This document shows, piece after piece, positions 3,578-48,000 of a stretch of 64,000 bases of DNA. The first letter of the stretch is position 1. Each line of letters opens with the position of its first letter. This stretch comes from Thalia democratica (lineage: Eukaryota), in assembly GCA_965202585.1 (NCBI GenBank), contig OZ241826.1, forward strand, positions 98,394,001-98,458,000, in the 5' to 3' direction. A model generated the notes under the pieces. It was not told the origin of the DNA. It did no database searches and saw nothing but the letters and a program-made list of their open reading frames with translations. Made by a program: the position numbers and the translations under genes.

Positions 3578-4267
3578 GGGCATAAGGGTAGGGGTGAATC
3601 TTTTTTTTTTTACAATTTGATCTTGTTTTCTAGAGTTTTAACTAAGCTACAAGATGTTTTTTTACAGGTTGTAAAAGTTCAAAATAATTTTTGAGGTATA
3701 AAAGGTCAAAGTTTAAGGCAGCAATAGGTTTCTTATGGGACACACAAACTTAAACGGCAAATAACTAGAAATCTTTTAAAATCTGCCTTTTCTTACATTT
3801 TTTTAGAAAACTACCTTAAACTTTCAGATAATGTTCCTTGCAATATTTAGTATTGCATAGATAATATATATATAATAAAATTCTGTAAGAAGGAATTTGA
3901 AAATAAATGAAAAATAAAAATTTAATAAGAAAAAAAAACTTTTTTTTGTTCCTTTTTTATTTTTAAATCTGTATATTTTAACCTTTCTGAAAGAAATTTC
4001 TCAATATTGCAAGGAAAATTTCCTGAAAGTTTAAGGTAGTTGTCTCAAAAAACGTAGAAGAAGATAGATTTTCAGTGACATATTCTTTTTTTGCTGTTTT
4101 AGATTGTGCCTCCTATACTGAACCTATTGCTGTCTCCAAATTTAACCTGCTATATCTCAAAAATTTTTTTGAGCTTTTGAAAAATGTAAAAAGCATCTTG
4201 TAGCTTACTTAAAACTTTATTAAATAAGATCAACTTGTTGAAAAAAGTGATTAACTTCCCTAAGCCC
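3578..4267. mobile_element. Foldback-like non-autonomous DNA transposon (about 690-bp imperfect palindrome, arms about 300 bp)
   Basis: The left end GGGCATAAGGG... mirrors the right end ...CCCTAAGCCC. Internal mirror blocks include ctaccttaaactttcaga..ccttgcaatatt (about 3811-3847) vs aatattgcaagg..ctgaaagtttaaggtag (about 4003-4039), and actaagctacaagatg (about 3641) vs catcttgtagcttact (about 4194). Flanks taaa/ttag are TTAA-like. Related fragments occur at about 700-975 and 61331-61520. Confidence 0.75.
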
Positions 4268-43290: not shown

Positions 43291-45199
43291 GTAAGTCAAA
43301 AAATCTACAATTATTTTTATATTGGTAACTAAGCAGCTTTTATTTACCAATTACAATTACTACATTCTTATCTTAAAAAATACTTATATAGCAAAGCTAT
43401 ATCATTTTTTCGTTGCTAAAATGTAGGACCGTTTATGATATTTAAGTGTTAAGAAAACTTATTAGCTAAATGATTAAACAAGATATTTAGAAATAAGTAA
43501 TTAAAATTTAAAGTAAATCTTGGCTAACAGAAACCTTATGATACGGAGAACAGTATACCTTTGTGTTAAAAGCTTAATTTAGTTTATTACAAGAACAACA
43601 AAGCCAAATCAAAGCAAAGTAAAACTAACAATTAAAAGAAAATATAAATATAGCTAGAAAGTATTTCGACATCTCCTCAGTATTACAAGGGAGATATAAC
43701 AATACAATAACCACGAAAACATTAAAGTTTTACAATCAACTTACTTTTCGTTTTAAATATTTTAAAAGCAGGACTTAACTTCAAAGCAAAAACACACTTA
43801 AGCTGATACAAAATTTTAATCGTTGTTTAGGCATTCATTAATTACTACTGACAAAAAAATCTAATTTAACTTCAACTTGACTTTACAGTCATGATTGAAA
43901 AAAGCTGTGATTCAGCAGCATGCTGAGGTCATGTTTTCACTGTGGTCCACTTCTAACAAATCAAAACTCTTCAAACATTTGCTCACATAACCTAGAGGTG
44001 GCAGCTTACAATAAAAGTCGGAAACAAATAGTATTATAACAGGAACTAGTAAACACTTGTTTTATTTCACATTGTACTTTAGTAAAATTTAAAATTATTA
44101 TTTTGTTTGACAAGAAAATATTTACTTAAGGACAGTTCGAGGTTATAATTTAACTTGCTTTTTTCCTTGAATTTTAGTTAAACATTAAGTTTCTAAAATT
44201 TCTGATTACAAGTGAAATAATTATGTTAAGTTTTTATTTTTACAAAATGATTTTCAAAGTGTTTTATTAAAATTTTATTAATATGTTTTTTAAACTATTT
44301 TAATTAATTTCAAGTGAGACTAATTAGTTCTTAATCGATTAATAATTACCTGTTTTTATTCCTTATAACACTCTTGCAATTACTTTACGATTATTTTATA
44401 TGTATATAAATCAAACTCTTTTTTTATATTAGCTCTGCATACAGTTGTTAAGAAAACATGAAACATATCTTGTACACTGAAATTATTTGTCTTTGCCTAA
44501 CTAGAAAAAGGTTATTTTGTAAGCTATTTTTTATATAAAAATAAATAATTTAACATTATACAAAATTTTGCAAAACAATAAAAATAAAACCTTTTTATAG
44601 TATATTTTACTTATTACCATTTATTTTTGATGTTTTAAAATTTTAATCATAAAATATGTTTAGGTTTGGAAATAGATATAACCAAAATCATCCGGTTAAA
44701 ATACAATTTTTTTGAATAGTAAACTTTATGTGTTGTAACAGAATATCAAACAATATTTTACAACTATTTTAATTTAAAGTTAAGTTTTCAGATATAGTTT
44801 ATTGAACGATAAAATAATGCTCAAAATATTTAGTCCTAGGACTTGGTGCAAGAACAACCTTTCAGTTATCGAGTCGTACACTACGGATACTTTTTAATGT
44901 CTTGACCAGGATAGATAACCTTTTTTATAGAGATAACTCGCTATCCTTGTCGAGTATAGATAACCAAAAAGATAATCTTTTTTGTCCGAGCGTGTAAGAG
45001 AAAGATTGCAAGGTCACGTGTTTAATCGATGAAACTTTGCGTTTGCACACTGCAGTCATATATAAGTGCTCATCAGATGGAGAAGGGATTCAACCGTACC
45101 ACAACCTTAACGTAGTAATTCGTCTATATTGTTTAATTATTTTGTGAAAAGATTTTGTTTAATAATGTTTTCTGCTTATAAAAGTTTCAAAAATTATAA

Positions 45200-48000
45200 A
45201 TAAAAAGTATAAGATTTATATAAAAATAGTGTGAAAAAAAAAGAGCTACTGATCAGAAAGAGACATTGAGAGGACAAAAAAGTGGGCGCTGGACAGCCTG
45301 CCTGTTTGATTTCGGCTGCCTGTTCTGCGTACCAAGTTCACGTCCCAGTGGAATTACAATCTCCCTCTGAAAAAACGACCTAACCAGGTTTACAATCTAA
45401 TGCATATCGCGCTAACAAGAGTGCTAGCAGCTAATCGCATTCTTATATACTTGCGTGGTCGTGCCCATGGAGAGCAACCACCGGGACTCGGACTCGGGAC
45501 GCACGGCCGGCATTCGCAGAAGCAAACCGCTGGGCCATACAGGCGCCCGCCTGTCTACTCTAATTACTGTATATAAACCATCTATATTCAAGAATGAATC
45601 TAAAAAAGTTTCATTTTAATGGAAAATTATAAATAAACAGTATAAGATTTATATAAAAATAGTGTGAAAAAAAAGGAGTTACTGATCAGAAAGAGACATT
45701 GAGAGGACAAAAAAGTGGGTGCTGGACAGCCTGCCTGTTTGATTTCGGCTGCCTGTTCTGCGTACCAGGTTCACGTCCCAGTGGAATTACAATCTCCCTC
45801 TGAAAAAACGACCTAACACTGTTAACAATCTAACGCACATCGCGCTAACAAGAGTGCTGGCAGCTAATCGCATTCTTATATACTTGCGTGGTCGTCCCAT
45901 GGAGGGAAACCACCGGGACTCGAGCTTGGGACGCAGGGCCGACAGTCGTGGAGGCAAACCGCTGGGCCATACAGGCGCCCGCCTGTCTACTCTAATTACT
46001 ATATATAAACCATTGATATTCACGAATGAATCTAAAAATGTTTTATTTTAATAAAAAAATTATAAATAAAAAGTATAAGATTTATATAAAATTTGTGTGA
46101 AAAAAAGGAGTTACTGATCAGAAAGAGACATTGAGAGGACAAAAAAGTGGACGCTGGCCAGCCTGCCTGTTTGATTTCGGCTGCCTGTCCTTCGTACCAA
46201 GTTCACGTCCCAGTGGGATTACAATCTCCCTCTGATTATTCCCTCTATTACGCTTAACCCTTACCCTCAGTCGCTAAATTATTATTTTATTTTTTTATTT
46301 CTTAATTTTTTTCATTTAATTTTTTCTTTTTAGTTTTTATTATTGATTTTTTTTTCTACTATCACAGTTACCCTTAAGCTTTACCCTCGGTCGGTAGATT
46401 TATTTTTAAATTAATTATTATTTTTTTTTATAAATTTGCATTAGATATTTTTTTAATTTTTACTATAACTGTTTCCATTACTTTCAGTCAATATTTTTTT
46501 ATTTGTTTTATTTAATTATCTTAAAGTTTTTTTCCTGTTGCTATGTATATTTTTTTTCTGTTTTTTTTTTTTATTCTCGTGCAAAAAATGTAACTCGTGC
46601 AAAATTAACCCTTTGTGTTAATTTGGCTTCGTGCAATTTTGTGCACTCGTGAAATTTAAACCTGATTCACTTAATACATATGATTTGAAAGAAAACATTA
46701 GTAGATTTTGATGTCTCTAATTTTAAAATTAAACAATGAATTAAATATACCAGATTTATCAAATATAAGGGTATGAACAAATAATCAATTAAAATAGCTT
46801 TTTATTTAAATTAAAATAACTCTAAAATAAATAAGTAAAAGTAACATATTTTCATGATGTTAAGGATTGTTATAAAGCACATATAATATTTGTTTAATTT
46901 TTAATTATGTTGAATTTTAATTTAATAAGTAATTTATTATTAATTGTTTAGGTTCATCCTTTATTCGGAAGTCAACACAACTCTTGTCAACAGTTTGTTA
47001 TGGTTTATCTTGATTATTTGTATTTTGACAATTGCTCACCTGAAAAGCAATAGTTTTTAATGCAATTTATAAAAAAACTGTGATTATTGTTATCCATCAA
47101 GCTAAATATTTTGTATCTTGATATTTTTTGAAATTTTTTCTTTTATTTATAAATTTATTTATAAATTTATATATATTTAGTACTCTATTTTGTTTGAAAA
47201 TTTTCTATGGCATACGATTATACTTAAGTTTTTATTCATTATTAGTGTTATTTTTTTAATTTTATTGTTGCTTTGAAGTCAAGATTTCAACAGTTTTTAG
47301 CAATAATAAGTATTTTAGCTTTCTTAAGGTGCTTCTGCTCCAATATTAAAATCCACGTAACGTCTCAGATAGACTTATTTATATAACATTAATTACTAAT
47401 TTAATTTTTTACACTTTTCAACTTTTAAAAAGCTTTATTCATCAAACAACTTTACAGGCGTCCGCCTGTCTACTCTAATTACTGTATATAAACCATCTAT
47501 GTTCGAAAATTAATGTAAAAAAGTTTTGTTGCAAAAAAAAAAACAATGAAAAAAGTATAAGATTTATATTAAAATTATGTGAAAAATATGAGTTACTGAT
47601 CAGAAAGAGACATTGAAGGGACAAAAAGGTGGGCACTGGACAGCCTGCTTGTTTGATATCGGCTGCCTGTCCTGCGTGCTGGGTTCACGTCCCAGTGGAA
47701 TTACAATCTCCCTCTGAAAAAACGACCTAACAAGGTTTGCGATCTGATGCACGGCGCGCTAACAGGGGTGCTGGCGGCTGATCGCATTCTTATATACTTG
47801 CGTGGTTGTCCCCATGGAGGGCAGCCACCGGGACTCGAGCTCGGGACGCACGGCCGGCAGTCGCAGAGGCAAACCGCTGGGCAATACAGGCGCCCGCCTG
47901 TCTACTCTAATTACTGTATTTGAACCATCTGTATTCAAGAATTAATGTAAAAAAGTTTCATTGCAAAAAAACAAAGAAAAAAAAGTATAAGTTTTTGTAT
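45200..48000. repeat. 432-bp tandem array (copies A, B, disrupted C, D); each unit is an imperfect inverted repeat of two convergent tRNA-like A/B-box heads
   Basis: GC-rich cores are at 45284-45548, 45717-45980, 46149-46235 plus 47457-47463, and 47631-47895. Periods are 432-433 bp. The minus head has an A box TGGCCCAGCGG and a T-arm CCGAG-CTCGAGT-CCCGG. The plus head in copy D has a perfect T-arm CTGGG-TTCACGT-CCCAG (47679-47695). A further fragment lies at 48913-48938. Confidence 0.85.
46236..46655. mobile_element. Repeat insertion disrupting array copy C (relative of the 20860-21360 element, opposite orientation)
   Basis: Array similarity stops abruptly after aatctccctctga (46235) and resumes at tacaggcgtccgcc (about 47453). 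The insert begins with taacccttaccc-type repeats and matches the reverse complement of 20870-21170. Confidence 0.65.

Follow-up and report, generated by a model that had tools for sequence, protein, structure and literature searches.

Tandem repeats built around a tRNA-related Pol III promoter are known from amphibians, and those outlined in a review (PMC10702118) include PolIII/TAN of the newt Cynops (~360 nt), OAX/satellite I of Xenopus, Rana/polIII (~250 nt) and Hy/polIII (~200 nt). We describe repeats from a 64,000-nt stretch of Thalia democratica DNA (the window) that resemble these, by description rather than by sequence, in three respects: their tandem units measure a few hundred bp, each unit includes a tRNA-like stretch in which Pol III promoter boxes lie, and no matching dispersed SINE accompanies them. 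Unlike the amphibian repeats, as far as the review's account extends, they occur in a host from a different animal group, amount to only ~140 copies, which make up numerous short arrays and no bulk satellite, have a 270-bp palindrome as their body and keep an upstream TATA within the conserved block. They also bear a T-to-C mutation footprint on one strand, of which that account of the amphibian repeats makes no mention. The snaR genes of African great apes are likewise small Pol III genes whose family is private to one lineage; according to PMC3045588 they go back to a mobile Pol III element, and segmental duplication accounts for most of their spread. Unlike the present family, snaR descends from Alu/7SL instead of a tRNA-type gene, and both its expression and its protein partner are known.

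Array anatomy in the window

Tandem Repeats Finder reported a repeat at 45189–46235 with a period of 433, 2.4 copies and 92% matches. Four unit starts are present at the locus, at spacings of 433, 432 and 1482–1483 nt, and the array therefore consists of two full units, a disrupted third and a full fourth ending at 47895. The tandem array with a unit of ~432 bp proposed in the initial annotation is borne out by this layout. The features are as follows.

45276–45548, minus strand: GC-rich palindromic block of unit 1, with the RNA sense on the minus strand; G1 at 45548, terminal T6 at 45276–45281
45570–45577, minus strand: TATA box of unit 1, TTTATATA, 21 nt before G1
45527–45537, minus strand: A box of unit 1, TGGCCCAGCGG, one mismatch to TRGCNNAGTGG
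45484–45494, minus strand: B box of unit 1, AGTCCGAGTCC, two mismatches to GGTTCGANNCC
45370–45375, minus strand: internal T6 of unit 1, which reads A6 on the plus strand and is predicted to terminate Pol III
45282–45369, minus strand: inverted arm of unit 1, complementary to the true head and past the internal terminator
45549–45708, no strand: AT-rich spacer between units 1 and 2, homologous between arrays, with 4–8 times the divergence of the block
45709–45980, minus strand: block of unit 2; G1 at 45980, TATA at 46002–46009
45803–45808 and 45709–45714, minus strand: internal and terminal T6 runs of unit 2
46141–46235, minus strand: leftover inverted arm of unit 3 with its terminal T6 (46141–46146), stopping at the internal T-run
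46236–47452, no strand: AT-rich DNA of ~1.2 kb that stands in for columns 11–182 of unit 3
47453–47492, minus strand: remnant of unit 3, with about the first 10 nt of the head (to 47463) and the promoter, TATA at 47485–47492
47623–47895, minus strand: block of unit 4, the most diverged copy; terminal run only T5, internal T6 at 47727–47732
47917–47924, minus strand: degenerate TATA of unit 4, TTCAAATA

The internal T6 of unit 1 occupies about +174 to +179 (alignment columns 175–180), and the block of this unit folds at −116 kcal/mol (z −5.1). The arm at its far end is the element that the initial annotation had read as a plus-strand head. No second copy of the AT-rich DNA within unit 3 is present in the window. 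Unit 4 differs from the family consensus at 30 positions, 19 of which are T>C. The family consensus B box, AGTTCGAGTCC, has one mismatch to GGTTCGANNCC, and a T4 at +78 that most family copies keep is missing from those in the window. With B boxes weakened, one TATA dead and one unit disrupted, the array in the window is an old, decaying member of its family.

Extent and identity of the family

The head motif was counted 132 times, the centre motif 138 times and the arm motif 144 times; most of these lie within the same arrays, and some are isolated fragments. The family comprises ~130–145 copies at about 45–50 separate sites, in arrays of 2–13 units on most of the large contigs sampled; truncated end units and array-level inversions are seen. 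Because head, centre and arm are equally numerous, the family is not a dispersed SINE and is unlikely to be a dispersed MITE. As in tRNA-derived SINEs, an unrelated body follows a tRNA-type head in which A and B boxes are present. Unlike such SINEs, the units lack dispersed single copies with flanks of their own in the hundreds or thousands, have neither a LINE-derived 3′ region nor an A-rich or simple-repeat tail, carry their upstream promoter and spacer along with each copied unit, and show head and arm in equal number. They share long inverted arms and a short centre with MITEs and foldback elements, and differ from these in being mainly tandem, with a constant homologous spacer, rather than dispersed insertions.

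Searches of both strands against all 4227 families of Rfam 15, at gathering and permissive thresholds, returned only three chance-level, unrelated matches; vault RNA, Y RNA, 7SK, RNase P/MRP and self-cleaving ribozymes gave none. As in 7SL and vault RNA genes, an upstream TATA is combined with internal boxes and the 5′ and 3′ ends of the RNA can pair, and the first 12 nt resemble the 5′ end of 7SL (GGGCGC...CCTGTA). Unlike those genes, the repeats have no Rfam match even at E ≤ 10, a limit at which RF00017 (metazoan SRP/7SL RNA) found nothing in the region. Identity with 7SL was rejected, since at least 11 genuine 7SL genes (229–252 bits) exist elsewhere in the genome. A hammerhead or other ribozyme, as in retrozyme-like repeats, was rejected for want of an Rfam match; the spacer has a CUGAUCA, but not the G that is essential in CUGAUGA. 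ARAGORN found no tRNA gene in the window or in 17 array-holding loci, and the Rfam tRNA model had no match even at E ≤ 10.

Metagenome pattern scans yielded no relatives in other species, and the literature yielded no description of such repeats in tunicates; the ~140-unit family appears to be private to T. democratica. What the arrays do contain is head-to-tail repeats with a tRNA-like Pol III promoter segment, the arrangement described for amphibians. The initial annotation had recognized no known RNA family, which holds for Rfam 15, and had offered three interpretations. A SINE master locus finds no support in the motif counts, which reveal no separately dispersed head. A clustered small-RNA (Pol III) locus is the best fit, given the minus-strand promoter, the terminators and the conserved block described below.

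Promoter motifs, conservation and the palindrome

On the minus strand, TTTATATA stands 21 nt before GGGCGCC and is followed by the A box and then the B box, which lie 43 nt apart from start to start, a tRNA-like spacing. The TATA box and its spacing are identical to those at the genuine 7SL genes of the same genome. A TATA-like box also precedes the mature 5′ end in 5/5 real tRNA genes examined there, and T4–T6 runs follow all five. The family units have a T4 at +78 and T6 runs at +175 and +269. An upstream TATA and a T6 run ~180 nt downstream, both noted in the initial annotation, are present, the latter at about 175–180 nt. Of the tRNA geometry it had assigned to the minus-strand head, only the A box, the B box and the distance between them hold up; neither ARAGORN nor the Rfam tRNA model detected a cloverleaf. 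Similarity of this head to the five real tRNA genes is weak (z ~1–3), and no source tRNA could be identified among them.

We consider it probable that each repeat carries one Pol III unit of the tRNA-gene type on the minus strand, which would produce RNAs of ~80 and ~180 nt from a constrained palindromic block found in short, scattered arrays, and that a transcription-linked T-to-C footprint has accumulated on it. The anatomy, the copy numbers, the conservation profile and the mutation asymmetry are observed directly, while transcription, the RNA ends and any function are read from these sequence features. The promoter of each unit would comprise a TATA at about −29 to −22, the A box at +12 and the B box at +55, and the T4 at +78 and T6 at +175 would serve as terminators. 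From these positions the main predicted RNAs would be ~80 and ~180 nt long and would stop before the inverted arm. The 90 nt after the internal T6 would be an old inverted duplicate of the head, closing with a second T6, a duplication that would make the GC-rich block of ~270 bp an imperfect palindrome. The block and its 150-nt AT-rich spacer may then have been multiplied by unequal exchange into short arrays, and these arrays scattered over the genome to give the ~140 units.

The initial annotation had instead proposed a convergent pair of Pol III heads, one gene per strand in each unit, with overlapping antisense RNAs. The arms are indeed homologous, and the plus-strand arm still contains a B-box-like AAGTTCACGTCC. 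This arm, however, has three mismatches in its best B-box match and two in its best A-box match, which is misplaced in that it follows the B-like site. The TATA-like run upstream of it in the window is not conserved in other arrays, the plus strand has no conserved terminator, and the mutation asymmetry described below has a single polarity. Only the minus-strand head is promoter-like, and the plus-strand element is, judged by these motifs, an inverted, degenerate copy of it without usable boxes. We regard two convergent genes as very improbable. A long hairpin or dsRNA made by convergent transcription, the third of the earlier interpretations, is unsupported as well, with no promoter features at the second head and two terminators ahead of the arm.

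Conservation follows the boundaries of the proposed minus-strand unit. Between array consensus sequences, diversity is 0.05 from −30 to 0 and 0.03–0.06 in the block, against 0.17–0.26 in the spacer and 0.18 past the last T6. The stretch from the TATA to the last T6 is therefore conserved 4–8 times more than the spacer, and the block, which ends in CCCAC and T6 before a spacer of conserved length, appears to be under constraint. Part of this higher conservation could come from gene conversion between arrays rather than selection. The inverted arm is as conserved as the part predicted to be transcribed, though it lies beyond two terminators, and a 180-nt RNA leaves this unexplained.

The palindrome itself, imperfect as the initial annotation had it, is well above chance: the local score of arm-to-arm inverted similarity is 41, against 14.5 ± 2.0 in 500 shuffles. 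When its 5′ half is aligned globally to the reverse complement of its 3′ half, 90 positions match and 34 do not, 16 more being gaps, and the palindrome extends right to the apical hairpin, which is present as previously noted (GCTAGCA-CTCT-TGTTAGC).

These arms raise the question of whether the functional product is instead an RNA of ~270 nt, running from G1 to the last T6 through leaky internal T runs and forming a long imperfect hairpin with paired ends. This RNA would act either as the structured component of an RNP or as a dsRNA substrate for ADAR- or Dicer-type enzymes. Conservation reaches exactly to the terminal T6 and then falls, and 5′ GGGCGC pairs with 3′ GCGCCC in what resembles an acceptor-type stem. 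The sense strand folds much more stably, at −129.7 kcal/mol (z −8.0), than the antisense, at −103.1 (z −5.4). Transition mismatches between the arms are of G.U type 14 times and of A.C type four times on the sense strand (p = 0.015), a wobble-favouring bias that hints at a full-length hairpin RNA selected now or formerly. Four of the 14 wobble pairs, however, are the T6 run itself, without which p = 0.09. Such an RNA would need read-through of two oligo-T terminators, and runs of T4 and T6 follow the tRNA and 7SL genes that we read in this genome, so that little polymerase should reach the arm. The T-to-C load, moreover, collapses beyond +180, and recent variants ignore pairing, with C variants at 20 of the 27 A-paired T sites. 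The longest unbroken helix between the arms is 10 bp, which is poor for small-RNA production. No compensatory changes or covariation were found in any predicted helix among 61 distinct copies, a check made uninformative by their similarity (97% mean column identity). On balance, a functional ~270-nt RNA seems to us unlikely.

The T-to-C mutation footprint

On the RNA-sense strand of the block, T-to-C changes exceed A-to-G by ~10:1. With the direction of substitution polarized by an outgroup clade, the counts are 20 and 21 for T>C and 2 and 2 for A>G, with roughly as many C>T as G>A changes; the mutation pattern of the spacer is symmetric. The T sites that have changed number 20/23 in positions 1–81, 16/32 in 82–180 and 4/13 in 181–268, so that the load drops stepwise at +81 and +180, where the two predicted terminators lie. 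The asymmetry tracks unit orientation in two adjacent, oppositely oriented arrays. Among the mutated T sites, a 5′ C is favoured and a 5′ A avoided.

Several sources of this pattern were rejected. Tolerated change from G.U to G:C conflicts with the C variants at the A-paired T sites counted above, and gene conversion from arm to arm with the finding that only three aligned arm positions have T against C. The reverse polarity, C>T deamination of the non-template strand, was rejected by the outgroup polarization and by the youngest arrays, and a replication-strand bias by the adjacent inverted arrays. UV-type damage is unlikely because C>T equals G>A.

The footprint also bears on whether the repeats are satellite-like or foldback DNA that is no longer transcribed, their Pol III motifs being relics of an ancestral tRNA gene, their uniformity the outcome of concerted evolution and their T>C bias that of a DNA-level process tied to the palindrome. 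Tandem organization, truncated end units, array-level inversions, the palindromic body and, in the window, weakened B boxes and a dead TATA are all in keeping with such DNA. Yet the limits of the asymmetry are those of the predicted start and terminators and do not follow the symmetry of the palindrome, whose two arms behave differently. Concerted evolution alone could hardly produce conservation that breaks off so sharply at the TATA box and the last T6, and the TATA stands at exactly the distance used by active gene classes. We think it quite unlikely that the repeats are of this kind.

Under the preferred reading of one minus-strand Pol III unit per repeat, the footprint would be linked to transcription of the part that bears it. 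In direction, with T>C and not A>G in excess on the sense strand, the footprint is the reverse of those transcription-linked asymmetries that are known to us, so the link to transcription is drawn from its boundaries alone. The 5′ C preference at T sites corresponds to a 3′ G preference on the template strand, and 3′ G is the known preference of ADAR. ADAR enzymes deaminate adenine on the DNA strand of RNA:DNA hybrids in vitro (PMC5389660). Two genes of the T. democratica genome carry the deaminase domain. That these are active, selected Pol III genes whose footprint records heritable deamination of template-DNA adenines within RNA:DNA hybrids is a speculation to which we give little credence; if true, Pol III genes would be edited through R-loops in the germline, a natural source of mutation that could be read straight from the genome.

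The stakes of the window alone are modest, its copies being degenerating members. The kind of repeat is known from amphibians, in which tRNA-type Pol III tandem repeats have so far mainly been described, and the family provides a chromosome-scale example in a distant marine animal. What sets it apart is the long imperfect palindromic body and the one-strand T-to-C footprint over the predicted transcribed part. Its clean unit boundaries, its conserved block from TATA to terminator and its presence at some 45–50 sites show that such repeats can behave as the members of a gene family do, and not as a bulk satellite. The mutation pattern is the more unusual result. If confirmed in population data, it would offer a sequence-only read-out of where Pol III travels and would also point to a mutational process that is tied to transcription and runs against the classical polarity.

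Unit structure and promoter

Tandem Repeats Finder placed an array at 45189-46235 (period 433, 2.4 copies, 92% matches). A repeat finder located the starts of four units, at intervals of 433, 432 and 1482-1483 nt. Each unit consists of a GC-rich block of ~270 bp and, after it, ~150-160 bp of AT-rich spacer. The coordinates and period in the initial annotation were correct, but the array is split at unit 3 by 1.2 kb.

Units of the array
45276-45548, minus strand: block of unit 1
45709-45980, minus strand: block of unit 2
46141-46235, minus strand: unit 3 remnant, left 95 nt
47453-47492, minus strand: unit 3 remnant, right end (first ~10 nt plus promoter), 1.2 kb further on
47623-47895, minus strand: block of unit 4

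In unit 3, columns 11-182 (counted along the RNA-sense, minus strand) are replaced by 1.2 kb of AT-rich DNA (46236-47452) that has no other copy in the window. The replaced stretch is almost exactly the predicted transcribed part, and the break lies at an internal T-run. An inverted repeat is also present at 3759-4091 (arms of 92 nt, 77% complementary, 149 nt apart).

On the minus strand, every block starts with GGGCGCC, with TTTATATA exactly 21 nt upstream. The genuine 7SL genes of the genome (at least 11 copies, 229-252 bits) carry the identical TTTATATA, likewise placed 21 nt ahead of the 5′ end, and terminate in a T6. The head (the 5′ part of the block) contains an A box, TGGCCCAGCGG, with one mismatch, and a B box, AGTTCGAGTCC, with one mismatch in the family consensus and two in unit 1; in units 2 and 4, the alignment gives AGCTCGAGTCC, with two mismatches. 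The plus-strand arm, which had been annotated as the second of two convergent Pol III heads, lacks an A box at the homologous place, has a B-like site with three mismatches and has no TATA conserved between arrays. Each unit thus has a single credible Pol III promoter, on the minus strand, instead of a convergent pair. The 7SL genes themselves (L042 and L043; G000:C10:11.57-11.71 Mb, C4:49.69-49.73 Mb and C2:48.92 Mb of the same assembly) form small clusters of oppositely oriented copies, and their promoter combines TTTATATA, 21 nt ahead of the RNA start, with a conserved upstream segment.

The absence of a known RNA family held for Rfam 15, which gave no match in the whole window at gathering thresholds and just three chance-level matches to unrelated families in the array region at E <= 10. 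These tests exclude 7SL, vault RNA, Y RNA, 7SK and a ribozyme. The tRNA geometry ascribed to the head did not extend past its promoter boxes: ARAGORN found no tRNA, and likeness to the genome's real tRNA genes is confined to the boxes.

Conservation, terminators and the palindrome

We aligned 64 full periods and compared one consensus from each of 13 arrays. Pairwise diversity is 0.17-0.26 in the spacer, 0.05 from -30 to 0, 0.03-0.06 across the block (+1 to +268) and 0.18 beyond the terminal T6, so that the conserved segment, sharply bounded, starts at the TATA box and ends at the second T6. This pattern suggests purifying selection acting on a Pol III unit; its source may instead be gene conversion limited to the block. 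Oddly, the inverted arm (the 3′ part of the block, complementary to the head) is conserved as much as the predicted transcribed part, despite lying past two terminators.

The sense strand of the family consensus has T runs at +78 to +81 (T4), +175 to +180 (T6) and +269 to +274 (T6). All five tRNA genes examined have a TATA-like box upstream of the mature 5′ end and T4, T5 or T6 runs after them. Because T4-T6 runs follow the tRNA and 7SL genes of this genome, family units would be expected to yield RNAs of ~80 and ~180 nt, with the inverted arm behind the predicted terminators. In the window copies, T-to-C changes have destroyed the T4, and their first terminator would thus be the T6.

The imperfect palindrome reported earlier is real. 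Read on the minus strand, the block's 5′ part matches the reverse complement of its 3′ part with a local score of 41, far above shuffled sequences (14.5 +/- 2.0), and the similarity extends to the apical hairpin already annotated. Global alignment of the arms gives 90 matches, 34 mismatches and 16 gap positions; with arms that differ by ~27%, against 3-6% between family copies, the palindrome is old. A consensus-like copy folds at -129.7 kcal/mol (z -8.0) on the sense strand and -103.1 kcal/mol (z -5.4) on the antisense strand; the first 180 nt alone give -66.1 kcal/mol (z -2.5). Transition mismatches between the arms are of the G.U type in 14 cases and the A.C type in 4 on the sense strand (p = 0.015; p = 0.09 without the four pairs from the T6 run itself). 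The family alignment contains no compensatory change in any helix, and recent variants do not spare pairs. Taken together, these structural results are compatible with a full-length hairpin, selected once or still, and do not establish it.

A T-to-C mutation footprint

Sense-strand variants relative to the consensus include T>C at 41/74 T sites and A>G at 7/58 A sites. Two clades make up the family: a 1-nt indel at column 78, together with a linked change at column 30, tells them apart, and each served as outgroup to the other. Derived T>C changes number 20 and 21 in the two clades and A>G changes 2 and 2; C>T (12, 13) and G>A (14, 17) occur about equally often. No such asymmetry marks the spacer (0.52 versus 0.50 per site). 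In two adjacent arrays of opposite orientation, the bias follows unit orientation (8:0 and 9:1), which rules out a replication-strand effect.

Mutated T sites fall from 20/23 (+1 to +81) to 16/32 (+82 to +180) and 4/13 (+181 to +268), and T>C occurrences from 97 to 54 to 5. In clade A, none of the 20 derived T>C changes is found past +180 (p = 0.007). Each step falls at a predicted terminator, which is the best of the indirect evidence that Pol III may transcribe +1 to +81 and to +180, seldom beyond. Mutated T sites favor a 5′ pyrimidine (26/36 versus 5/19, p = 0.0016), a context that fits the neighbor preference of ADAR enzymes.

The polarity was unexpected. The mammalian asymmetry favors A>G over T>C on the sense strand. 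At human tRNA genes, the signature associated with transcription consists of excess C>T and G>A (PMC6130373). ADAR enzymes deaminate template-strand adenines within RNA:DNA hybrids in vitro (PMC5389660), a reaction of matching polarity, and we hypothesize that it could underlie the footprint. An adenosine-deaminase (A_deamin) domain is encoded by two genes of this genome, at G000:C7:19657995-19663369 and C7:15488599-15497429; stop codons in 3/4 matched pieces of the latter may reflect introns or a broken copy.

The family across the genome

Units match the 800-Mb assembly at dozens of sites, with 90-95% identity. Arrays in sampled DNA hold 2-13 units, repeat every 419-433 bp and have truncated end units. 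Two arrays stand head to head in one sampled case: at G000:C9:43539995-43540258 (locus L032), arrays of nine and seven full units join inside a unit, with columns 150-276 on both sides, and the pair forms an array-scale palindrome. Searches with three 26-nt motifs (<=2 mismatches; reversed-pattern controls gave 0 matches) found 132 head, 138 center and 144 inverted-arm occurrences, mostly in common arrays with a few isolated fragments. The family is medium-sized. The thousands of dispersed copies that the initial annotation associated with an ordinary SINE or MITE are not there, and the near-equal counts in shared arrays argue against either element.

All three full copies in the window fall in the older clade, and T>C at both T positions has weakened their B boxes; unit 4 no longer has its TATA and shows 19 T>C changes. 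With unit 3 disrupted as well, the locus looks like a decaying member, not a master copy.

Separately, weak tRNA-model matches recur every ~16.03 kb across 1.4 Mb at G000:C6:22746503-24124559 (sampled by loci L046-L068), on the minus strand first and then the plus, as a large array of 16-kb units in two inverted blocks; ribosomal DNA, or an organelle genome copied into the nucleus, could account for it.

We found no description of such a family in tunicates in the literature. Primate snaR genes (PMC3045588) offer a parallel, as a family of Pol III genes that is likewise private to one lineage and was multiplied by DNA duplication. Tandem repeats with a tRNA-like Pol III segment include PolIII/TAN of newts, OAX/satellite I of Xenopus, Rana/polIII of water frogs and Hy/polIII of Hydromantes (PMC10702118). 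The Thalia family is of the same kind. It stands apart by its host group, copy number and array pattern, by a palindromic body and a conserved upstream TATA and, as far as the accessible part of that review goes, by its mutation footprint.
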